NCBI GenBank assembly: GCA_900088475.1
Contig: FLMG01000284.1
Span: 1 to 64,000, forward strand
DNA length: 64,000 nucleotides
Direction of reading: 5' to 3'
From: Hyphochytrium catenoides
Taxonomy: Eukaryota; Protista; Hyphochytriomycota
The notes under the pieces were generated by a model that was not told the DNA's origin, searched no databases, and worked only from the letters and a program-made list of their open reading frames with translations. Position numbers and translations under genes: made by a program. Position 1 is the stretch's first letter, and each line of letters begins with the position of its first letter. Shown piece by piece: positions 123-64,000 of this stretch.

Positions 123-3100
123 CCCGGATGGCCGGAAAGCATCCATCTGCTGTCCAGTCTCCTGCGCTGGGCAACCTCATACGACGCGATGATTGAGAGC
201 TGCGGCAGAATCTTAAGAGTAGCTCTAACGCTTTGTAGACCCACTTCTTCTCCTCCAGAAGGGTTCAGAGAAAGGACAGCAACAGAAGAGGAGAGAGGTC
301 TGTGCCTCTCGTTCTATTCCTCTTGTCAGCACTTCGTCTCTCGTTCTCTGTTTCCTTCCTCTTCGCTCTTTAGCATACCTCGCAGGTCTGTCTCTCTGCA
401 CAGACTCACTTTCTCTCTCTCTCAGCACACGTGTTCTCCCTCTCTTCTTTCTTTCTCTTTCTGTCACAAGCAACACTTTCTTCTTCTCTCCCTGTGTATA
501 CATATAATGCCTGTTCTGGACTCGTCGCCCACTTTCTTTTATCTCCTTGGCTGTTTCTTTTATTGCTTGCGCTCTTCAAGCTCTGCTTTATTTGTTCTCT
601 TATGCCTTTCCTCGCTTGCTTGCAGATTCACTGAAGTGGCTCAATCTCTCTCTCTCTCTCTCTCTCTCTCCTCTCACACAATCAATCCATCGACATATCC
701 CTCTCAATTGTCTCTCTCTTTCTCTTCTCTCGTTCTCTCCCTGCATCTCCCTCTTAATGGTTCTCCCAGTTCTCCAGGTCCTCCTCGCTTTATTAAGAGC
801 AAAAGACGCTGATTTCCAAGAGTTCCTCCTTCAAGGAGGAGTCTTCCAGCCCTTTGAAGAGATCTGGCAGACAGAGCTGCGCCATAATACCGCAGAAGAA
901 CAGCGGCGAAGCGAGAGCGAGAGAGAGACCAAGCAAGGATCCCTAAGAGACAAGCCGCGGAGTTCACTGACGACGGGATCCTTTTCTCATTCCTCTTCTT
1001 CCCTAATGTCTCCTTCCTTCTGCGAGGCAGAACGAAAGGGCAAGGAAGCACATCAGGAGCTAAGAAAGCTCTTCTTTGTCATTGCGATGGAAAAGCTCTC
1101 CGCAAACGCAGGGTTTCGGCTGTACATCAGCAGTAGCACCAAGGAAGAGATGATGGATTATGTCTTCAGAGAAGCCGTGGAGCTCTCCGCCCGGCAGGAG
1201 GAGGAGGAAGGAGCAGAAGAAAGTGAAGAGGAGACGGAAGATGACACAGAAAGAGAAGAAGAGAGAGAAGAGAAGACAGAGAGGAGAAGGAAGAGGGAGA
1301 AAGGAGAGCCCAGACGGCAACAATCACCGTCCGAAGAAACGCATCTGGAGCTCCATAAACAGCGGAGAAGAGAGACAGTGACTCACGCTCTCATCTTCTT
1401 CTCGCAGATGCTGCACGACGAGAGGCTCTCTCTCTCTGCCCGTTACCTCTCGCCTGGGCTAATCAGATACTTATCGCGGCTCTGTGTCACCTCCTTCAAT
1501 GTGAAAGACAGAGTAACAGCCGCCGACATTCTCTCCCACGCAGCCGAAGAATGTCTTTCTCTGGGCACTTCTCACGCACTCCTGGAAGCTGCAATGTTTC
1601 TCTTAGAAGGAAAGGAACTCTCTCTCCGGACAGCTGCTCTTCGACTTCTCTCTTCTCTCAGCAAATCCAGGCAAGATGGCGTATACCTTAGATTGGCGCT
1701 CACAGAGTTCCTGGCCACGACTTTACAGCTCACAACAGAAGTACGGGAAGTGGCAAGGAAAGGAGATACGTGGGACGAGGACGAAAGAGAGGAGACAATC
1801 GAGGGAGAGAAAGCAGAGACTGCTATGAGGGTGCTGCTGCCCATTATCCCCGGCCTGAAGGATGAAGTATGGCGCTTCCCCTTAGAAGGCTGGTTTGAGA
1901 GACAACAGGGAGAGAAACGTGTGCTTCTCTCTCTCCGGGAGAGACAAAATCGAATCTTCTGCCGCGTGGCAATACCTCCCAAGGAAGGATCAACAAAGGG
2001 AGCGCGGCCAAAAAAGAGGACGAGACGTGAGCGTGAACCAAATCAGCAGCAGCATAGAGAAAAGCCAGGGCAAATCGAGGAAGGGGAGCGCTATCACACC
2101 CTAGAAATAGAGAAGACGGAGGATGTCCTCGAGGTGCTGGAGAGAAGAAACCTACGTCTCCTCGTTCAGAAAGAGACAGAGGAGAGTCACGACCAGAAGA
2201 AAGGCGGCAGGAGAGGAGCGTTTTTCCTTTCTCTCCTTCGGGCAGCCACCACCTCATCTCCCTCCGACTTATCCCCTTCTCCTTCTTCTCCTTCTCCCTC
2301 TCCCGCTCCTCCGACACACAGCGATGGCCCCTCGAGTCCAAAGCGCTCTACTACGCATCTTCTCTCTTTCCTAAGACCACCATCCAGATCAGGACAGTTA
2401 GGAGAGGAGACGATCTCTGGGGCCCCAGAAAAAGTCGAAGTTAGGGCAAAAGTGGACGAGATCCGTCCGAAGTGGTCCGCCAGCCCAGCCAAGAGGGAGA
2501 AAATAGACTCTCAGGCTGAGTCTGGCCATGCTCTGACGGCTAGAGAGACCGAGACTAGGGAGGCGGCTGCCCGGGCACCGGAATTACCGGCCAAACTAGA
2601 GCGTGAAGAGCACGAAGACAGGAAGAGGGAAGACAGAGCAGAAGAGAAAGCCGCAAGGGAGAAGCCTAAGTCGGCGGAGACAGAGTTAAAAAGAGGAGAG
2701 AGCACTGGAGAAGAGAAAGGAGGAGAAGAAAAGGAGGGCACAGAGGAAGCAAAGCCAAGGAAGGAGGTGCCCAGGATGGAAGAAGTAGAAATCAAGCCGA
2801 GAGGAGAGAGCCCTCCTCCTCCGCTCACTGTCATTGATGCTCCTCCCAGCAGATGCTGGTGCTGCTTCTGTCTCTCTTCGCTTTTGAAGAGGCTCCAACT
2901 CTGCTGCCGAAGAAGTAAAGCGGCAGAGGGAGGACCTGTCCTCCTTGTGGCACAAGCAGGACACCAAGGAAGAGAGGGAGGAGGACAGCTGAGCAAAAGC
3001 AAGGCAGAGGAAGCTTCAGGGGAAGAGGAACAGCAGACGAAGGAGGAGAAAGACGAAGTTCGCAGTCCAACTGTNNNNNNNNNNNNNNACGGAAAGGATG

Positions 3101-5298
3101 AAGAAGAGGAAGAGGAACAAAAGAAGAGAGAGGAAGAAAAAGAGAATGAAGGAGAGAGACAGAAGGAAAGACCTGATCAGAAGGAAGCAGATCTTCAGCC
3201 AGAAACAGAGCCGCAAAGAGAAACTGTTATCTCCTCTTCTTCCCCTCTGATCGTCCCTCCCTCCCTCAGCGGCCTCCTCAGCATGGAGACAGTGGCAGAA
3301 GAAAGCGAGAAGAACGAAGAAGAGGAAGAGAAGACTGGGAGCAAACACTCAGGAGAGGCCTTGTTACGAGACAAGAGCAAGAGCATCTTCTCCCTCAGAT
3401 TTGGCAGAAGAAGAGAGAAGGAGAAAGCTGCTCGTCTCTCCTTGGCTGTCCCCCAGGATCCCTCTCTACCTCTCTCTTCAGACAAATCTCCCCAGAAATT
3501 GTCCTCTTCAGTCTCTCTCGCTCAGCCAACGGCCCAGCCTCGTAGAGCTAGGCAGAGTCTTCGCTTATGGATCCCAGGAAGAAAGCAAAGCCTGATCCCA
3601 GATTTCCCGCAGAATGGAGAAGAGAGAGAAAAAGAGAGAAAGAGACTTTCCTCACTGAGAGGTAAGAGAGGAAGCCAGACGCGAAGGAGAGGCTCTCCTA
3701 GAAGAAGCTTTGAGCCGCTCTCTCCTCTCTCCTCTTCCTGTCCGCCACCATCATCATCATCTGACTCTTCGTACGTACATCCTGAAATTCTGCAAGAGAG
3801 ACAAGAAGAAGAAGGAGACGATGCTCTTCATCCTTCTCTTCTTGAAGATTATCTCACCAAGATGACGGAGAAGAGACACAAGGAGAGCGCTTTCTTTCTC
3901 CGTCTAACGGAGACAGAAAGAGAGGATCTCATGGAACAGGATGACCTGGGAATGTATGGAGAATACGGAGAAGGCGTGAACCGACGGAGTGTTCTCTCTC
4001 ATCTAATCTTTCTCTTTTCCTCTCCTCACCCAGAGGCGAGGTTTCTCTCTCTCCTGACAGTGTTCAATCTGCTGACATCAGAGCTAGCAGATCATCTCAT
4101 TCTCTCTTCTCCAGCATCTCCTTCTCCTTCTTCCCCGTCAAGCTCTCGTTCTCCTTCTTTTTCCCAGCGTTCCTCCCCAGGACGGTCACCTTCTCCTCCT
4201 CGACCTCGCCTTCTCTCTTCAACTCTTCGTTCTCTCTCTCCATCTTCTCGTCCTTCCTCTCCTCCTCTTCGCCCGACCACCTCAGTCTCGAACAAGTCTT
4301 CATCCTCTCGAAACTTCCTTTTCTTTCAGCGGCAGGACGCTCCTCCCACTCGTGAGACAGAAAGAAGCAGCGGAAGAGAAGGAGAGGAGACTGGGGCCAG
4401 TCCAAAGAAGAGAGAAGACAGAGAGGCTGCAGAAGAGAGGAATGAAGACGGCCGTCCTTCCACCGCAACCACCACCACTTCATTTGTCTCTGCTACCTCC
4501 CAAGGAAAGAGTGAGAGTAAGGAAGAAGAAGAGCAACGGAAGAGAGAGAGTGGATCGTTTCTCTTCGGAATCGGTGACCCAGGTTAGAGTTGCATGTACT
4601 GATCGTCCTGTGAATGGCTCTTCTCTTTCTCTCTCTCTCTTCCCCGTTCTTACCCCTTTTCTCTCCTCCCTCTCCACTCTTCCTGATCCCTCTTGGGCAG
4701 GAACCGATGTCTATAGGACTGAGAGCAGTCGGGAGAGAAAGCCTCTGGAGCCCTCGTTCCATACTTGTCCCCGCTTTCTCTTTCTCCAAAGAGACGGAAA
4801 GACGTCTTCCTATCGCATCCACAAGCTTCTCGTCAGGGCTGGCGCTGTCCTCCCTCTCGTCCTAGCAGAGCAACAATGTGGTTCTTCTTCTCTCTCCTTC
4901 CCAGTCTCTCTCTCTCATTCTCTCTCTCTTCCAGGTTCATCACCGTCGTCTTCCTCTTCGTCCAGCTACGAGCCCCTTATAGGGCAGCTGGCGGAGGCGA
5001 TCATCAGTATCATTGTTAGCCTTAGCAGGGATTATGAGATCTACTTTGAGGTTGCGCGACGATCTTGTCAGAACAGAGAGAAGAGAAGGCAGAAGATGGT
5101 AGAGGATGAGGCCAAGCAAGCGGCAAGGGAGAGAGAGAGAAGAGAGCTCATGGGACGGTACAACCCTGCCGAGCTCCTTCGGTATAGAAAGTACTTTGAC
5201 ATGGTAAAGAGCTTTGAAAGCTACGGTGCCTCTTCTTTCAAGCTACAGTGCCTCGACTTTCTCTTGCACTCTCAGTCCCTCTCTTTCTCCCTCTCTCT

Positions 5299-45996: not shown

Positions 45997-46833
45997 TTAC
46001 CAGCTAGGAGCTCCAAAAAAGTCCCCTTCACTAGGCAACACTGCTGACATCTCCGTAGGAGCAGGAAGGAATGGCTTGAAGATATCGGACTCCTCTAGCG
46101 CACTCATCACTTTCAGTGTTGAAGGCTGCTGTACGTTGTCTAGGCTCTCAAACCACCCATTGCAGGAGGCAGGGAGATCTGCACCAGTAAACAGGCCAGT
46201 TGATGGTGGCAGAGCCATGTCGAAAAGAGGAAGATCATCATCCATTGGGGAGGTGAAGGCTAAGCCGTAGTCTAGAACATCCAAAACGAGATCAGCCTCC
46301 AAAGAATCGTTCTTCAGAACATCACTGGACATCTTGAGCATCTTTGCTGGAGGCTCATAGCTAGAGACCGCACATCTCTTCATGGTTGGAGAAGGGGCGT
46401 TGGGGATCCGCAGCTCCATAGAGCGTGGGGATTTCTGTGCAGTCTTTCTCCGGATCATCTTGAGGTTTTCAGGGTTGTCCCTAGTAAAGTACGGGCGGTA
46501 GTACGTGCATGTCTCAGACTTGCTCTTGCTCATCTTTTTGAAGCCGAAGTAGTTGAGCTGCCGCTGAAACGACGCAAACTTGTTATGTCTGAAGTATTTG
46601 GGCAGGATTATCTCGGTGAAGCGCTCCTGGTCCTTGATCTCAAAGGATGTGCCGCTGCTTGACCAGGTGATGATTGAGGCATCCTCTACCCTAAGGATAG
46701 TCGAAAGCTTCTCAAGAAACGGAGCTACGATAATTCTGGGGCTTCGAGGAGACTCCAGCGTCGACATATGCATCCTATTAGCAGCCTCCACGTTGATCGT
46801 GGGGGCTACCTTCAGCTGACCAAGGTGGCTCAT
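45997..46833 (-). CDS. HSF: HSF-type DNA-binding transcription factor, single exon
   Basis: PFLEKLSTIL...IITWSSSGTSFEIKDQERFTEIILPKYFRHNKFASFQRQLNYFGFKK...YFTRDNPENLKMIRRK, followed by an acidic/aromatic C-terminus. Confidence 0.95.
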   Translation of the reverse strand: MSHLGQLKVAPTINVEAANRMHMSTLESPRSPRIIVAPFLEKLSTILRVEDASIITWSSSGTSFEIKDQERFTEIILPKYFRHNKFASFQRQLNYFGFKKMSKSKSETCTYYRPYFTRDNPENLKMIRRKTAQKSPRSMELRIPNAPSPTMKRCAVSSYEPPAKMLKMSSDVLKNDSLEADLVLDVLDYGLAFTSPMDDDLPLFDMALPPSTGLFTGADLPASCNGWFESLDNVQQPSTLKVMSALEESDIFKPFLPAPTEMSAVLPSEGDFFGAPSW

Positions 46834-47265
46834 GGTTCTTGGGTTCTCGTAGGAGATACTCTTTGAGCTCTGGCGACGGCGCTGCGTCCTCTAGTGGATT
46901 TGAAACTGGTCTCTTGGTCTTCTTCTTATGGTTCGTTTGCTATGAAGCTTTGTTGCGCTCGTATCGTTGCAAAATGAGGACTGAAGCACGAGGACGCAGT
47001 CAGAGCTTATCAAAGTGATCCCCAAGCACCAGCCTTAGCTTTGAGATAGGAGGATTTGAGAGAAGAAAGAGGAGAGAGGGAGCAAGTAAATCTGTAGGCA
47101 GAAAGTCACCGCTCGATGGGTTTGAGGATCTTTCTGCCCCTCACCTCTCTATCAGCCTCTATGCCTCCTCCCTCTTTCCGATGTTGAAGCAGCCTATGAT
47201 CCTAAACGCTGGATGATGCTTCAAAAGAGGGACACTTAGAGCAGGCCAGAGGTTGGGGACGGAAG

Positions 47266-54421: not shown

Positions 54422-54650
54422 NNNNNNNNNNNNNNNNNNNNNNNNAGAGAGAGAGAAAGAGAGAATGCGAGAGAGAAAGAGAGAGAGAGAGAGGGGGAGG
54501 AGAGAGCGAAAGATAGATGAGAAAAGAGAGGGAGGAAGGAGAGAGAGTGGAAGTGGGGAAGAGAAAGGGAAGAGACAGGAGGACATGGAGGACGAAGGAG
54601 AGGAGAATGAAACGAAAAGAGGCCAAAAGTGGAAGAGAAGAGAGAGGGAA
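54422..54650. repeat. Assembly gap followed by an (AG)n-rich tract upstream of the TIR gene
   Basis: Ns at 54422-54445, then a purine-rich AG tract. Confidence 0.9.
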
Positions 54651-55077
54651 GCCCTCCCTTTTGCTGGGCTTCTCATGCTTCTGTTCTTCTTTTCCCTGAC
54701 TCTGTCAGCCCTTCTGTCAGTGCCCTGTACCGCTGCTTTTTGAGCATCCCTCCTTCCCTCCACACCGTTACCAGGGTGCGCCATTGTGTCGAGTCAGAGC
54801 GCCTTAGAGGAAGGATCAGGACAGAAGATAGCATCATCCCGCGGTGGCTGGCGGTACAAGTCGGTGCGGTCCTTGCTGAAGAACTTGGCTTCAGGACGCC
54901 CACATCAAAGATTCTGAAGCTTCAATGCGGTGGGGCTGCTAACAAACGCGGTCAACTTGCCTTCTCCAAGAGACCAGAGATGCCTGCAAAAGGACATATC
55001 TAAGGATCATCCAATCACATTGAGCTAGTTATTGTGAGGCGGGTCGAAGAAGTCCTCGAACTTCAGCCCACATTAAC

Positions 55078-58000
55078 ATGGACTTCACCCCGAAGGGCTC
55101 AACGCCGCTCCTCGATGAGGACAAGGAAGCACTTCCCAGGATCAGCCGGAGTCCCGCTTCGGCGGGTCGTGGTAAGTTTATCCATAGAGTAGAAAGCCTT
55201 TCACCGGGGTGTTAACCAACTGCCTCTGATGTACTCCTGCAGGACACGCTTCTGAGCGACTCATGGGTCACGGGTACGCACCACGCCCGAGTTCAGCAAA
55301 GAGTTCAGTGAGTGGTAAACTGGAGGGAGCTCATCGCGTGAGTCTGGCAGATGTGGTTGCATTATCATCATCGTCATCTGGGCTTTCACATGCCCAACAA
55401 GAATCCCACCTTCCTGCGCATGGCCCTGTTGGGGCGTCATCCATCACTCGACAGACTCACTCTGAACACGGCGATTCTATATATATCACCGGCTTAGATG
55501 GAGATCTCCCTCTCGATGGTAGCACTGACCAAAAGCGCTATGAACGTTCCACTAGAGACACGACGTTGAGGTTCGCTCCACCACAGCAGCTCCGTAAGTT
55601 TTAGACGCCCTTCTTGCCTTCGATGCCACACTTACTGAGCTACCCGCTGCAACTGAATATGGTCGCTGTACCTGCGTAGGTAAAGCGAAGCTGAAGTCGG
55701 GAAGGATGATGACGAATAGCTTCGTTGCAGCCTCCCTCCTCAAAATATCTCTAGTCATCTTGGTCATCGATGTTGTCTCACTTTATGTCGCCGTCAAGTA
55801 CACTTGGAAGGACCGCACGCGCAGTGTGGATGAGTGCACAAATTTTATCCGTTACTCAATGTTTGCAAGCTTTTGCGCGCCACTCAACATTATCATTGCG
55901 CTCTCAGCGACCGGGTTCTCGGTTTTCAAGTAGGTAGCCTCATAAGGGAAGGCGGCCGTTTAGTGCCCAACATGTCTTTCCTGACCTCAGCTTGTGGCGA
56001 GGACTGAAGTCACTCACCGTTGCTGCCGCGTTGATTCTGACAGGCTCTTTGAAAGACAACCAAACTCTACCAAGCTCAAAAGGAAGTTCTGGCTGAACCT
56101 TTGTGAGTTTGCAGTCACCATCCTGGTGGCATTATTTGTAAGCATATTTGTTTCTATTTGCTTCTAGGTAGTGTGGGCTCTCTGACTCTCGTCTGCAGAT
56201 GTTCTACATAATCTTCTTTCTCACGGTCGTGAGGATCATGATTCAGGAGAGCGATAGCTGTTTCGGGGAGAGTGGCATGCAGATGTTTGGGGATGTCGCG
56301 GTCATATGTTTATGCGTTCTAAAGATGCTACTCAGCTATTGGCAGCTGCAAATTTTTGATGTCTTTAGAAGGTCCGAGAACTCTCTTTTTTCTTTTCATT
56401 GCACTTTCTCCTCCGTTCTCAGTCCATGTCAGCGACCATCTCCCCTATCTTTACCCTTTTACTCCACGTTTAACACTCTAATTCTCTTGTCTCTCAAGGT
56501 TCCTTTGTTCCCTTTCAACCTTGTCTAGTTCATTCCTCGCGTCTGTCCGCCTTTTGTCCACATAGCTGTTAGGTGCAGCAAGTTAGCTAAATCGTTTCTG
56601 TCGACAGCCGATCCCGCGCGCAGCTCGGCACTTTTGACGAGCTGTCTCAGAGCAACTACACCAGCAAATGGATTCATCCTAATGCAAATAGTGTCGCAGA
56701 TCTTAGGAAGAAGCTGTACAAGGCCGTCAGGTACGAGGCTTAACTCATTAAGCTCAATTCCGAGTTCCTCAGGGTTGCTGACCAACTGTCTGCCGGGCGC
56801 AATTTGTTACTTCCGCGCTGCCCGCTACTGCGCAGCCTATGTGATACTCTGGAAGCGACCACACTTTTAATCAAAGCAAGAGATACCTACGGCACCGACT
56901 TCGTCAACCGAATCTTTGCCTCGCCCAGTTTAAGGTGAGAGCCACCATTAATCCAGTTGTCGGTATAGCGTTTCGCCTAGTGAGGCTAGAAACAAACTGC
57001 GTACCTTCTCTCTGCCCATTTATTCTACGTCGACCTGTCATTGTGCTTATATTGTTTCTCAATCACGTGCCATACGTATAGTTGTGGACTGTTCGCGGAG
57101 TCCAAGAAGAATCCAATGCATGTTGCTGCTGCGTCAGGAGACATCGAGATGCTAGAACTCCTAAAGAGTTACGGCTTTGACGTTAATGCAATGGATAAGG
57201 CAAGCTTAGTGCTGTTTCCACACGCATTCCGTTGGCACTTTTGTCGGCGTTTACATCCGTTCCTCTTTACCGATACTTTGCTCGTTACTACGCTATCTCC
57301 TTTCTTAAAGAAGATCCCCCAATAGGAGAGGTCATGTTTCCTAGACGGGAGTGATCATGTCCTGTTGTCTTGTGTCCTACTTATCTTTTAACTCCCCTAT
57401 CAGGTGGATAAAGTCCGCTTCAGTATCTCCGCTCTGTACGTGTCCTTCACCAATTGGATTACCTCTGGGGTCGGCTTCAATAAGGTGAAAGGGACGGGGA
57501 CGGGAAGCATTCGTTTACGCTCAACTTTGGTCTCACCGCTACACGTGGCGGTGGCTCGAGGGGTAAGTCATGACTCGCTATCCTGTTCAGTGCTAATGCG
57601 TTGCATCTGATAACGTTCGCGTTACGACTCTCTGTCCTTTATGGTGATATTTCTCCTGGGACAACGGCCTATGCTATGAGCAGAAGCTGGCGGCGGTTCG
57701 ATGGCTCGTGGAGAATGGAGCAGATGTAAACTGCCTCTCCATATCGTCGAAGTCTGCGGAGCGGGTGCCTCCTCTTTTTTACGCCGACGATACGCAGATC
57801 GCTCTGGCCCTACTGGCAGCTGGTATGGCCTGTGTAGAACTTCACTCTCTGTCTGGAAATTTTCCTAGTTATTTGTTGACAGCCATTAGAAGAGGCGTCG
57901 ATTTCCTGCTTCAGATCCTGCTAATGTCCGCGCTCTTTAGACTGACCTGATGTTTTAAACTGATAGATGCAAACGTCCTTTTGGTGCCAAACGTTGGCAG

Positions 58001-61000
58001 CTTCTCTTGCACAACGGTGCTGGAGTATCAGTATTATAAAGGGAACGACCAACTCTGCTCGTTATACAAGGAATGGGGAGGAGACATCTGCCTCACCCCT
58101 TTACATGCTGCTTCTGCTAAGAATGAGATAAGAACGATCGCCAAGCTGCTTAACGCAGGTATCGCCAAAGTCAAACGACACCGTATACACGGGCGAAAAC
58201 AAGTCGATGTTTAGTGTCCAACGCCTGCTGCCATAGTCTCTTCCTTCCCTTATCCTTTCCTCTCTTCTCAAGCAACGCTATACCTATCATTTTACCTGTT
58301 CTTCAGGTACTGCTGGCGAGCTTCAGTATGACTCAGCTTTACTCCTTTTAATTTTTTGTATTGCCGTACGCTGGCTCCTTTCAGGTGCAAGCGTCGATTG
58401 CCTCGGTGAACAGTATGAAGGGTTTCATCGGTTTACGCCGCTCCACTGGGCCGCTGTCAGTGGCAGTCATGATGCAGCACGTCTTCTTTTGGAGAGGGGG
58501 GCGGATGTCAATGCACGAGACGCAAGAGGTAGACGTGTTGAGCTCCACGTGTCCAGCATAAAAGCCATTTGTATGTAGGCGAACTAACGCAATAAACTGT
58601 CATTCGTAGGGCGGACCCCGTTGCACTGGGCCGCACGTCGGAACCGGGCCTCCATAGTAAAGCTCCTCATTAGTCTCGGAGCAGAGCCAGACGCCATTGA
58701 CAATAAGTGCGGAGTGCTCTTCATCTTTCTTGTCATCCTCTCAACAGATTGTTGCAGAGAGAGAGTGGTTTTATGTACTATTCTCCGCTACACTGCTGTC
58801 GGAGGCTGTCTTGTACCATGAAGACTTGGCTCTGTCTTTGTCCTATACACTAACCAGAGCTTGATTTTCAGGGATGATAGGCGGACTCCCATTCTCTTTG
58901 CTGCGGAGTTCGACGGCGTTGACAAGGAAGTTTTCTTGACTTTGAGGCAAGCAGGAGCCAATATTGACGCCAGGTGCATCTGCAGTAAAGCCCTCCCTTA
59001 AAAAACTATGCATTGTCGTTCATGGTCTTTGTCTTGGCCCCTGCTGCGTATCTTTGTCTGTGAAGAACTTAAATGCTGTGTGGCCCTCACGACCGATTTT
59101 CTGCAGACTGCCTAACGACGATACAGCGCTGCACGTGGCTGCCAAGCATGAAAACCTGAAGACTGCGCTTTCCCTTGTGAACTGTGACGCAGACGTCATG
59201 GCATCAAACCTGGAAGGAAAGAGGTAAACGTGTTGTCCGACCTGTCTAATGGGTTCTGTCATTGCTCTCCATGCCGCTAACCTGTAATGCTGTAGGGCCA
59301 TTGACTGCACCACGTCTACCGCTTTGGCATACGCAATCAAGCAGGAGGCTGGGGCTCGGGATGTCATGATTAGGTGAATCTGGCCGTTTATCTGTGTCAC
59401 CTATTGGCCTAGGTCTCATCCCTCCCTCTTCACCTTCTCTGTGCTTCCCCTTTGCAATTCGACCGTTAGCTATACACACTCGCATGCTGAGTTCGCTACA
59501 AAGGTAAGGAGCTATGCCCATCTCAGCATTTGTGTGTGAGGTTAATCGTACCTGTTATCGCCATAATACTGTCTTACTCTATACCTTTCTCCTCCATGCT
59601 TGGTCCGCCCTGAAGATTCACGATGAGCTGAAAAAGAACAATGTCACGGTCTGGATGGACAATATGAATCCGAGCGGTAAGACATATCTGAATCACAATA
59701 TGCTCACTTTGGTCCGCTATCTTTCTTGCTGCTGTAGACGTACGTATCCTCAGTATAATGAGTCTGGGAGACGTCTTCGATCTAGGGCAGACAAGGCTCG
59801 TATAATGATGTATGTGGCCACTCACTCTGAAACTCTTCCCTACAGGGATTGAAGGCGGTGCTGTATGGCGGGCATCCATCGCTCGGGGAATCTCTGAGGC
59901 GACCCTAGTCCTCTGTATCCTTTCTGAGGACTATCCGAGCAGCTCCTGGTGTTTGAAGGAGCTTGCCTTTGCAAAGAACTGTGAGAAGCCAATCTTGGCC
60001 ATCAGCTGTGAGGATGTCACAATTAATGACGAGTTGCAGGTAAATAGGTCAAAGAAAGCAACAGGCGAAGATAAAGAGGAACAAAGGGCAGAGCGGATTA
60101 CTCTCAGCAAACCCTAATTAGAACTTTCGGCGCACGTTATGTGAACTTCACTTCGATGAGTTTCCTGATTGACTCTATCACACGCGTTGCTCTTAAAGCT
60201 CTGTGATAGTTCTAAAACGAGAAGTCTTGCAAGCTGACGCCTTCTTTTGACTCGCTAACCTCTAAAACTGCTGGCCAGGTTTACCTCTANNNNNNNNNNN
60301 NNNNNNNNNNNNCTGGACGGCGTAAGGGACATGATCGAGACCTCCAGAGTGGCAAAGAAGGACCCGAAGCTCAAGGAGTCCGCTAAGAGCGAGACGTTGA
60401 TGAAGATGCTAGCAGAGATGAAGACGCAGCCGCGAGAGGGTAGGAAGGACAGGAGTTACAATCAGAGGAGAGATTCTCTTCGTTTGATGTTGGAGGCTTT
60501 TGTACGCCTCTTTCCTCTAAACCTTTCGCCCCTTCGGATTACCTGCTGACAAGCCATGACTCTCCGCACTAAAAGTTGCTCTTCGTTAGGAGGTTTCGTC
60601 TTCATCAGCAGCGGGGACTGTCATAATGAACTTGTTGCCGAGATGGTACAAGCCCTGGAAGCTCAGGACATCCCTTGTTATGTTGACTCCCGATATCTTT
60701 ACGGGTAAATATCTTCTACCTCTTACTTTGTTCTCTCGGCACTTGCACTCGAGCTCGGAAAATCTGGCTTTATATAGATTTGGAGCGAGACAATCTTTCT
60801 ACTTCTGTCGTCTCTCCATCTGTTGCTCTCTCTTGTGTCTTTCGCTCTTCTTATCCTTCTGGCCCACCTTTCCCCGCTTTTGATCCCAGGTCCATGCAAG
60901 TTCGGATGCAGAAGACAAAAGACTTCATCCTCCGCTGCTCCGCTTTTGTAGTGGTTCTTTCCCCCAAGACAGTGGGGCTAGATATCATTAGTGATCAGCT

Positions 61001-61847
61001 CGCTTTCGCGGAGGACAAGGGCAAATATGTGATCCCAGTCCTTTACTCAGACGTGCAGCTAGACTTCGGTAAGGACCCAGGAGAAGGGTGGGCTAGACTG
61101 CTACTAAGGAGCAGAATAGAGAGAGAGAGAGAGAGAAAGAGAGTACACGAGGGCCAAGAACGAGGGTCACTGACATTATGTATGTCGGTTTACAGCAAAA
61201 CTCTACTCCTTGTCACGGTCGAAATTTGTCCACTTTTGCCGCCACTTGGGCACCCGGGATAGCGTTGAAGACCTGATCTATACCGTGAAGATGGGTCCGA
61301 ACTCCAAACCATCGCAAGACCTGGGTCAGCCCCGTCCTCCTCGCTCTGGCGCGCCGTTTCTGCGCTCGGCGAGCTTCTCAAACTCTAGCGGCAGCTTGGT
61401 CTTCTCGAACTGGCCAACAGTGAACCCACCAACGGTTCCGCCGGCTGTGGAGCCAGGTAGGCAGGTAGCCCCACCAGTGTCGACGGCTCCGCTTTCAAGG
61501 ATGCCGAGTCGTCGGATGAGCAAGGGACACATTTTCACGATTGATGAGAGGTAAGCCTGACGCCAACGCCATAGACTTGAGCCGTAGCGTGTTACTGACC
61601 GCCACCCTCCTCTTGTCCCCAAACTTCTACTGCCGGCATCTTTGGACGACGCTCTCGACAACTTCCCAACGTGTTCAATGGGTCCCTCGTTCCCTTCTTC
61701 CAAATTCTTTTCTCTTCTCTCTCTCTCTACTTCTCTCTCTTCTCTCTCTCTCCTCGCTCTCTCTCTGTCTCTTCCCCGTTCTCGATGGGAATCTGATGCT
61801 GGGCCTGGCCTGGCAGTGGCGGAGACCTCATGCCATCTCTTCAATAG
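55078..61847 (+). CDS. Four-TM membrane protein - ~8 ankyrin repeats - TIR - TIR (TIR_2-like)
   Basis: ATG 55078. Hydrophobic helices LLKISLVILVIDVVSLYVAV, FASFCAPLNIIIALSATGF, FAVTILVALF/MFYIIFFLTVV, VAVICLCVLKMLLSYW. Ankyrins NPMHVAA, SPLHVAV, TPLHAAS, TPLHWAA x2, TPILFAA, TALHVAA. TIR1 DVMI/SYTHSHAEFATK/IHDELKKNNVTVWMD...LCILSEDYPSSSWCLKELAFA...KPIL. TIR2 FVFISSGD...IPCYVD...FVVVLSPKTVGLDIISDQLAFAEDKGKYVIPV. The last exon is uncertain (stop 61554 or 61847); an N gap lies at 60290-60312. Confidence 0.88.
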
Positions 61848-62247
61848 TGTCTGGTCTATGATTAAAGATCAGTCACCTTAGTTATCACGGATGTCCGTTT
61901 CGTTGTAGCTGGATTTTGGATAGGTTGCGAAGTTTTATTGGGTTTTGATGTCTAGTATTGCACTATTTAGAATCTACAATCAATCATCCTGAATGTACAA
62001 GCTTAGAGGTTGTCAAGTCCTCCCCCCTGATCGCTCTCCTCGCTCCTCTAGCCTTTGAAGCCCTTGAAGGGCTCTAGAACCTGTCTTCCCACTCTTTAGC
62101 TCCTGTTGCTGCTGCCATCGACCTTGGCAGCAAGAACGACACGCGCCAACCATCAAGATGCAATGCTAGTCAAAGGAGAGGAATGGTGAAGCCAGCGAGC
62201 CTAGATCTGAAGAGGTCGTCTAGAAGAGGAGCGCAAGGAGAGGTTTG

Positions 62248-64000
62248 ATGGACGTGAGAACGACGAGGTCGTACAATCAGACAATCGCGGCAGCAGCAGA
62301 TATCGTGAGGTTTTGATGGACTGATTGCCTCCATAGACGTCTGCCCAGCGTGTGGGTGCAGTAAAGCAAAGGACCTCCAGACGCGATGGCTGCTATCTTT
62401 GATGTTAGGAGTCGGAGAAAGCAGATTGTTGAACAGCTGGTTGGTCTACTGTGCATCCGCTGTCATACATTTGAGCCTTGCATACCATTCTATGACTCTT
62501 TCCCAAGTAACTCTGTCTTCCTTCTGGATGGCATGCCGAAAACTGAACATTCTTGGTCTGACTAGAGTTCCGGAGAAGCGGCCAAGCTGCTGAGTTCGAC
62601 TCAAGCGGACTGGTGGGAGACGCAGAGCAGCCGAATAGAGCTCTGGCTTCAGAAAAACCCACTCAAGATTGGAATTCCTGATGACGGCACTGATGAGGTC
62701 TCTCGCTCTCTCTTTCTTAGTCTTTAGTCATTGTAGCACACTCTCACTCTCGGTTTTAGAACTTCGTTGTCGCTTAAGTTGTTTCTTCGTTCCGTCTCAT
62801 TTTCCTCTTCCTCCTGACGGCCCATCGTCATCTCTCCTCCACGGCTAGACTGTCCTTACTCAGATAAAGCGGGGAAATGCACATCCCAGCGCCCGGGTCA
62901 AGTGCTGGTTACATATCGGTAAAGTGCAAGAATCAGTCGATGTCCTCATAAAATTCTCTCCTTCGCATGCCCTTCTGATACTTTTCTGAGGGGAGCCACT
63001 TCTCCTCCGTCCTCGCTCTGCTCTTCCTGCGTCGTCTCCTCTTCCTGCCCTTTCTTCCACATCCCGTTGTGTCCTTCTAAGCCAGTTACCTCATTCCGAC
63101 TCTAATGCCGTACACAATCTTTAGTCATGGAACTGCAAGGGCTTCCGGGAGTTTCTTCGGACATTCTAGCGTTCGAACCTCCGGCGCTGCCAGAGGAGAC
63201 TCAAGACCCAGCTATGGACCCAGCAGAGGGCTCTCAAGGCTCCAATGAACCCTCAGAGTAAGTCATATCAGGTCACCAAGCGGACGAGAGATAGGAAATG
63301 TTGAGTAGAGGAATCGCCAAGAGTGAGTAAAAGAAGTGCTCTACACGGGAGAAGAGAGTGGCTTAGAAGTAAGATGAAAAGTGGTTGAGGGCTCTAGAGG
63401 GAGATTAGAAGGAAAGCTCATCCCTCTCTTGTCTGTACTGCAGCTTGAAGCTCGACATCCCCTCAGCCTCCCAAGAGGATGGTCATAGCCTTTCATCTGC
63501 TGATACAAAAGACAGCAGCAGCCCATTAAGGGGGCGCCTTCGTCCAAATAGGAGTCGAAGCGCAGAAAGAGAGGAAAGTGAAAGCATCCCTGAAGGTAAA
63601 ACGGACAGGAGAAGACCATCGTCCTCTGGGAGTTCCATCAGTGCTCGTGCGGTGGCGGCAATTGCTGCTGCTACTGCAGCAATCCAAGATCTAGAAAAGA
63701 CGGGCACCAGAGGCGACACAGATACTGGAGCAGAAAAGGAGGAGGAGAGAGCAGCATCTGCGACGGAGAACGATGACAGACAGGAGCCACAAGAGCCAGT
63801 GAAGAAGAAACCGCTGGCCAGTATGTCAATGATGGAGAGGCAGGCAGAGTATCTGAGGCGGAAGCAGGAGAAGATTGACGCGGAGAGAGCAAGATTAGAA
63901 GCAGAGAAGGAGAAGGAGCTTACATTCCAGCCGAAGATCAAGAAGTACACCAAACCTCAGCACGCTTCCCATGAAGAGTCCAACCAAGGTCTCCAGACAG
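62248..64000 (+). CDS. Coiled-coil protein with ELTFQPKI motif, 3'-truncated (possibly microtubule/cilium-associated)
   Basis: Phase-consistent spliced model MDVRTTRSYNQ.../KGPPDAMAAIFDVRSRRKQIVEQL/SSGEAAK.../IKRGNAHP...HI/VMELQGLP.../LKLDIP...MERQAEYLRRKQEKIDAERARLEAEKEKELTFQPKIKK, open at the window end. Confidence 0.65.

Follow-up and report, generated by a model that had tools for sequence, protein, structure and literature searches.

A Hyphochytrium catenoides gene for an oomycete-type ankyrin-TIR-TIR protein with four predicted membrane helices

Results

We analyzed a gene located near the end of a 64,000-nucleotide stretch of DNA from the protist Hyphochytrium catenoides (Hyphochytriomycota; assembly GCA_900088475.1, contig FLMG01000284.1, positions 1 to 64,000 of the forward strand; hereafter the window). 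Its product runs from a low-complexity N-terminus through four hydrophobic helices into an array of ankyrin repeats, which is followed by a first TIR domain (TIR1), a linker, and a second TIR domain (TIR2) (Table 1). A first-pass annotation of the window had proposed this domain order, and we recovered it in the rebuilt gene. Our reconstruction confirms that an intron-rich protist gene with this architecture is real, and the gene structure, read at the level of sequence, indicates that one gene probably encodes a predicted multi-pass membrane protein. The alignments outlined below place it in the oomycete-type ankyrin-TIR(Glu)-TIR(Gln) family, where Glu and Gln are the residues found at the catalytic positions of the first and second TIR domain, respectively.

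We read the region 54500-62500, translated its three forward frames and joined the exons manually into a spliced model, which was then checked with a script. Twenty exons (55078-60289) precede an assembly gap and five (60313-61847) follow it, with 876 residues of the visible product encoded 5' of the gap and 268 residues 3' of it (~1,144 residues). The reading frame is kept at every visible exon junction. The visible introns comprise 22 of the GT-AG type and one of the GC-AG type, one further junction is hidden by the gap, and intron lengths range from 61 to 242 nt. An alternative GT donor is located 9 nt downstream of the GC donor at 57200 and would add 3 residues. The start ATG at 55078 has an A at position -3 and a G at position +4 and is preceded by an in-frame stop at 55021-55023; the first in-frame stop of the spliced model is found at 61845-61847. 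Retention of the last intron would shift the end of the protein to 61551-61553. We also devised a codon-usage log-odds score, which was trained only on ankyrin and TIR exons with Pfam or homology support and set against the gene's own introns. Each of the seven N-terminal exons and the large C-terminal exon scored best in the modelled frame, as did 15/15 training exons in a leave-one-out test. A tblastn search within the window found no tandem paralogue. The segment 54200-54800, 300-900 nt upstream of the start codon, is rich in GA/CT microsatellites and contains an assembly gap (54422-54445); promoter sequence or an undetected 5' exon may lie concealed there.

The N-terminal region is probably disordered and yielded no Pfam match over residues 1-161. 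It is followed by the four transmembrane helices claimed in the first-pass annotation, which we found as four peaks above 1.6 in a Kyte-Doolittle hydropathy plot with a 19-residue window. Helix 3 may be one long helix or a hairpin, because it comprises 31 residues and crosses an intron. Charged residues are present inside helices 1, 3 and 4. Lys plus Arg over Asp plus Glu count 5/0 in the stretch preceding helix 1, 6/1 in the loop joining helices 2 and 3, 0/3 in the loop from helix 3 to helix 4, and 3/2 in the stretch that follows helix 4. These loop charges fit an N-in/C-in topology of the modelled protein, which would thus put the ankyrin array and the TIR domains on the cytosolic side. Searches with the four-helix exons returned nothing meaningful in Pfam, PADLOC and NCBIfam.

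For the remaining domains we scanned 20 exon translations (exons 3, 5-16 and 19, and the four large post-gap exons) against Pfam. The only significant matches were to Ank and TIR, with three others at E = 0.045-0.15. Ank scored above its cut-off on exons 8, 12, 13 and 15 (E = 1e-10 to 9e-5, single-exon scans). Six canonical xPLHxA repeats are found at residues 402, 476, 574, 612, 645 and 715, accompanied by degenerate repeats and caps, and the earlier estimate of about eight repeats is a fair one if the degenerate repeats between the canonical ones are counted. Exon 16 encodes the final helix of the ankyrin array together with the strand that opens TIR1 (DVMI/SY), and the ankyrin part and TIR1 are therefore fused within one exon. 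The first 40 residues of exon 9 (57404-57523) do not resemble ankyrin repeats and represent either a loop insertion or a mis-set acceptor.

Exon 19 carries the strongest TIR signature, with matches to TIR_2 (E = 1.3e-8, 35.8 bits, cut-off 28) and TIR (E = 1.1e-7). At the motif SSSWCLxEL, which in 7xoz reads SSSWCLDEL, the TIR1 exon can be aligned with plant TIR NADases whose structures are in the Protein Data Bank. Its WCLKEL motif is identical to the motif surrounding Glu73 and Glu892 in the Phytophthora TIRs for which tests are tabulated in the supplement of Hurieva et al. 2026 (bioRxiv 10.64898/2026.04.20.719644). TIR1 thus contains the glutamate on helix alpha-C that characterizes catalytic TIR domains, whereas TIR2 has a glutamine.

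The assembly gap interrupts TIR1. Codons start at coordinates of 0 mod 3 before the gap and of 1 mod 3 after it. Because the flanking frames differ, 23 N cannot be the true gap length; an uninterrupted frame calls for 1 mod 3. The letters before the gap end with ELQVYL and a dangling "TA", and the letters after it open with LDGVRD. In Table S4 of the same preprint, a P. cactorum fragment reads LQVYLYTRQ and then LDGVRDE, with the two motifs 37 residues apart, and the P. megakarya TIR reads ELQVYLWTRQ at the aligned place. The dangling "TA" agrees with the Tyr of P. cactorum. The flanks match adjacent TIR parts in the right order and on the right strand, and both sides thus most likely belong to one gene. 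The first-pass annotation had asked for this gap to be closed: its flanks fit one TIR domain, but its annotated length is not frame-true. It is most likely that the gap lies within an exon and hides ~37 codons from the C-terminal third of TIR1, plus possibly an intron. The exon following the gap begins with the end of TIR1, and TIR1 and TIR2 are therefore joined. We also considered a false join of two unrelated contigs, which is unlikely given that the sequences on either side correspond to neighboring portions of a single TIR.

TIR2 shows a weak Pfam match only (TIR_2, E = 0.02 on one exon). Of the Ank and two TIR_2 matches that the first-pass annotation had expected, Ank and the TIR_2 of exon 19 were thus found, but the second TIR_2 stayed weak. 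TIR2 is nevertheless colinear with TIR1 across 128 aligned residues, with its QLAFAEDK aligned opposite ELAFAKNC. Its nearest ESM-Atlas cluster is TIR_2 (0.93, 177 shared features), and it resembles, ungapped, the second TIR of the Phytophthora proteins printed in the Hurieva et al. 2026 supplement. The proposed TIR fold is hence upheld for TIR1 by the exon 19 match, and for TIR2 by its alignment to TIR1, the Atlas cluster and its likeness to P. cactorum. The glutamine at the catalytic position of TIR2 had been missed in the first-pass annotation.

We compared the gene to published oomycete proteins. "Uncharacterized ankyrin repeat-TIR proteins" have been described as common to oomycetes (Lapin et al. 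2022, PMC9153377). Table S2 of Hurieva et al. 2026 lists Ank followed by a GLN-type TIR for many oomycetes, with examples from Albugo, Aphanomyces, Achlya, Peronospora, Pythium and Phytophthora, and Table S4 prints four Glu-type oomycete TIRs from ankyrin-TIR-TIR proteins (bioRxiv 10.64898/2026.04.20.719644). Members include UniProt D0N4Z2 (listed as P. nicotianae), A0A225WB63 (P. megakarya), A0A329R8T2 (P. cactorum) and A0A024G7A5 (Albugo candida). The first-pass annotation had not recognized the architecture from characterized systems. Ankyrin-TIR proteins of oomycetes are noted in the first of these sources and the Ank-TIR(Glu)-TIR(Gln) arrangement is tabulated in the second, and the architecture is therefore not new; the family is known but biologically uncharacterized.

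By hand count, the pre-gap part of TIR1 is identical to the P. megakarya TIR at 63/105 positions, ungapped, and to the P. nicotianae TIR at about 51/93. TIR2 shares about 44 of 112 residues (~39%), again ungapped, with the second TIR of the P. cactorum fragment. Across the TIR exon junctions, residues are spaced as in the printed, intron-free Phytophthora sequences, which supports these junctions. Our gene has 24 introns. Its predicted length (876 + ~37 + 268 = ~1,180 amino acids) compares with 1,179 amino acids tabulated for the P. nicotianae protein, with TIR1 starting at residue 773 here and at 816 there. Like the oomycete proteins, the gene product has an ankyrin array N-terminal to the TIRs (four exons with Pfam Ank matches, six canonical repeats), a similar first TIR with its glutamate in WCLKEL and, as judged from the GLN listing and the printed P. 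cactorum sequence, a second TIR with a glutamine in DQLAFAEDK, all in the same order and with the same spacing. Common motifs further include MISYTH, PSGI-GGAVWR, IARGI, WCLKELA, LQVYL, LDGVRD, ILRCS and YSL-RS. The inter-TIR linker is shorter in our gene (~43 versus 76 residues in P. cactorum). Homologue searches with the TIR1 and TIR2 exons, among proteins of up to 178 or 334 amino acids only, gave no candidates, as expected since the relatives comprise 1,000-1,500 amino acids and exceed the eligible lengths. Two metagenome matches of the TIR1 exon were rejected as relatives, being plant and bacterial TIR proteins: L001 is a fragment with a plant TNL-type TIR exon, and L002 is a high-GC bacterial protein of 517 amino acids having an N-terminal TIR with an SSWCLKELA motif.

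Elsewhere in the window, a stop-free stretch at 46000-46890 on the reverse strand resembles a heat-shock-factor-type DNA-binding domain (ILPKYFRHNKFASFQR) and is probably a neighboring gene of the heat-shock factor family. A second stop-free stretch of 1,346 codons (547-4587, forward strand) is of low complexity, dominated by Glu, Lys, Ser and Arg, and broken by a gap at 3075-3088. Either it is one long exon, or the GA/CT-rich composition of the DNA gives rise to it.

Table 1. Features of the modelled ankyrin-TIR-TIR gene (positions in the window)
Feature	Position	Strand	Basis
Whole modelled coding span, 25 exons	55078..61847	+	Exon table, phases, splice sites, coding-frame test
Ser/Gly/Ala-rich N-terminus, residues 1-161 (exons 1, 2, start of 3)	55078..55717	+	Composition
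Hydrophobic helix 1, residues 162-187, contains Lys and Asp	55718..55795	+	Kyte-Doolittle peak 2.48
Hydrophobic helix 2, residues 207-231	55853..55927	+	Kyte-Doolittle peak 1.78
Hydrophobic helix 3, residues 247-277, spans intron 56138-56198	56087..56240	+	Kyte-Doolittle peak 2.84
Hydrophobic helix 4, residues 290-316, contains Asp and Lys	56277..56357	+	Kyte-Doolittle peak 1.91
Ankyrin array, residues ~351-770 (exons 6-16)	56696..59353	+	Pfam on exons, repeat scan
Sole GC-AG intron (AAG/GCAAGC, near-consensus donor)	57200..57403	+	Splice-site reading
TIR1 before the gap, residues 773-876 (exons 16-20)	59360..60289	+	Pfam, PDB, Phytophthora alignment
Codon of Glu847 at the catalytic position of TIR1 (WCLKEL)	59959..59961	+	Alignment with 7xoz and Phytophthora TIRs
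Assembly gap in TIR1, 23 N	60290..60312	.	Sequence, flank frames
TIR1 end (LDGVRD...) and Lys/Glu-rich linker	60313..60439	+	Gene model, alignments
TIR2, residues 43-172 of the post-gap piece (three exons)	60590..61290	+	Pfam, TIR1 alignment, Atlas, P. cactorum
Gln codon at the catalytic position of TIR2 (SDQLAF)	60996..60998	+	Aligned to TIR1, oomycete GLN listing
Pro/Ser-rich C-terminal tail and short last exon (61817-61847)	61291..61847	+	Gene model

Discussion

We favor the view that the gene probably encodes a membrane ankyrin-TIR protein in which TIR1 makes cyclic ADP-ribose (cADPR) and TIR2 is a non-catalytic partner. In such a protein the N-terminus, the ankyrin array and both TIR domains would all face the cytosol. 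TIR1 is most likely an ADP-ribosyl cyclase that consumes nicotinamide adenine dinucleotide (NAD+) and makes cADPR or a close isomer, and its activity would follow the clustering of copies at the membrane. TIR2, where a Gln replaces the catalytic Glu, is most likely unable to cleave NAD+ and would act as a built-in partner that assembles or regulates TIR1. The ankyrin array is a likely binding or auto-inhibitory part. The topology of the protein, its activation through clustering, what TIR2 does and what purpose the protein serves are our inferences. Production of cADPR is taken from the homologous TIR1 of P. nicotianae: according to the supplementary tables, this TIR (residues 816-972 of a 1,179 amino acid protein, with the catalytic Glu892) was active and cADPR-positive in E. 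coli, and the text of the preprint describes the activity as Glu-dependent (bioRxiv 10.64898/2026.04.20.719644). The NAD+/cADPR signaling suggested in the first-pass annotation thus gains support from homology, with the glutamate of TIR1 and ~55-60% identity to the tabulated oomycete TIRs, one of which is cADPR-positive. The immune role and the coupling to a pore that the same annotation put forward are hypothetical.

Several points weigh against this explanation. The portion of TIR1 inside the assembly gap is unread, and TIR1 is interrupted. Identities to the published Phytophthora sequences were counted by hand. In the same supplementary tables, the other three oomycete constructs, including a fragment with both TIR1 and TIR2, are not marked active, and under the conditions used activity thus did not extend to the family constructs in general (bioRxiv 10.64898/2026.04.20.719644). 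The four helices were read in our gene, and the tables in Hurieva et al. 2026 give Pfam domains only. A phmmer search with the largest four-helix exon (helices 1 and 2) against 1.84 billion proteins gave 0 matches. The 25-exon model was read from genomic DNA alone, with splicing predicted, and its weakest donor (AAG/GTCCGA) is the one from exon 5 to exon 6, where helix 4 is joined to the ankyrin part.

The lack of phmmer matches, the predicted splicing and the weak donor would also fit a model artefact, in which the exons at 55078-56371 make up a small membrane-protein gene of their own and the ankyrin-TIR-TIR gene begins further downstream, as would the fact that an unspliced exon 5 reads through to a stop at 56526-56528. 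We regard this as very unlikely. AAG/GTCCGA is nonetheless the best phase-compatible donor for exon 5, and the intron between exons 5 and 6 (56372-56607) is only 236 nt long. Exons 6 and 7 score as coding in the modelled frame yet contain no ATG, and the ankyrin part is thus unable to start alone before residue 406. In addition, the oomycete relatives, as tabulated, carry ~240-330 unannotated residues before their first Ank match. The connection from helix 4 to the ankyrin part remains the weakest link of the gene model.

The homologue data also bear on what TIR1 may do with NAD+. In an alternative scenario, TIR1 would empty the cell of NAD+ and kill it, as SARM1 does, for example in an abortive defense against a virus or parasite. 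TIR1 is the same type of TIR with a catalytic Glu, and Guillardia theta TIRs are reported in the preprint to have made cADPR and depleted NAD+ after overnight expression (bioRxiv 10.64898/2026.04.20.719644). The P. nicotianae row of Table S4, however, shows nothing after the 'yes' for cADPR, and NAD+ depletion was therefore apparently not recorded for this TIR. We thus consider such an executioner role unlikely.

The TIRs of Toll-like and IL-1 receptors are classically assumed to be protein-protein adaptors. Both TIRs of our protein could, in analogy, form a non-enzymatic scaffold recruiting partners to the membrane, and this would agree with the lack of a catalytic Glu in TIR2 and with three of the four family constructs not being marked active in the tables. 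The Glu of TIR1 and its surrounding motif are, however, conserved with Phytophthora at 55-60% identity, and one homologue, the P. nicotianae TIR, is listed as active. A purely scaffolding function is hence quite unlikely.

A further possibility concerns TIR2. In Drosophila Raw, a pair of TIR folds forms one pocket that binds and hydrolyzes cADPR (PMC13455253). Because the Raw TIR pair forms such a pocket, a sensing or hydrolyzing role of TIR2 is possible, and by analogy TIR2 may be a nucleotide sensor or hydrolase. If the four helices formed a pore or channel gated by TIR2 upon sensing the cADPR made by TIR1, the protein would be a Thoeris-like fusion of producer and effector. The charged residues in helices 1, 3 and 4, which are unusual for a plain anchor, point in this direction, as do bacterial type VII Thoeris, in which TIR-made cADPR activates a membrane-spanning effector, and the ability of the Raw pair to bind and hydrolyze cADPR. 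The helices, however, match no channel or defense effector model in Pfam, PADLOC or NCBIfam, and nucleotide binding by TIR2 is purely hypothetical, which makes this arrangement highly improbable. If true, it would be a membrane-embedded unit that makes and answers its own signal, a eukaryotic single-chain counterpart of bacterial Thoeris.

To our knowledge, enzymatic TIR signaling is well worked out in bacteria, in plants and for SARM1, and almost nothing is known about it in protists. Major plant and animal pathogens belong to the oomycete-type group. The gene described here is not a new kind of system; it extends a conserved ankyrin-TIR-TIR family beyond the oomycetes proper. Its conserved pairing of a presumably live TIR with a presumably dead one, and a possible multi-pass anchor, lead to concrete hypotheses for cADPR made at the membrane.

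We finally compared the predicted protein to other TIR systems. In SARM1, dSarm and TIR-1, a repeat-domain regulator likewise precedes a Glu-type TIR, which turns NAD+ into ADP-ribose or cADPR and needs TIR-TIR assembly. SARM1 differs in forming an octamer by means of ARM repeats and two SAM domains, in having a single TIR and in lacking a multi-pass membrane module. We rejected the gene as a SARM1 orthologue, since Pfam found no SAM or ARM among the 20 exon translations scanned. Drosophila Raw and C. elegans OLRN-1 (PMC13455253) also have two TIR folds per chain and a link to cADPR metabolism. As judged from its description, Raw belongs to a separate TIR family with dimerization domains, is characterized by two TIR folds with DD1/DD2 domains and a conserved Glu/Asp/Arg/Tyr set, hydrolyzes cADPR rather than NAD+, and has no ankyrin repeats. 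Toll-like and IL-1 receptors are, like our protein, membrane proteins with a cytosolic TIR, and the TIR of TLR4 is reported to make cADPR. They are, however, single-pass proteins that carry one TIR and whose sensor is an extracellular LRR or Ig domain, whereas the gene here encodes four helices, no ectodomain and repeats that would be cytosolic. A receptor of this kind was rejected based on the four hydrophobic segments, a start that is not signal peptide-like, and the lack of an LRR or Ig match. Bacterial Thoeris ThsB and TIR_2 defense proteins have a TIR_2-type domain with the same catalytic Glu, and our gene matched ThsB models weakly, with scores that fall far short of the family cut-offs. 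Unlike the predicted membrane protein, ThsB and its relatives are soluble bacterial proteins, which act together with a separate effector.

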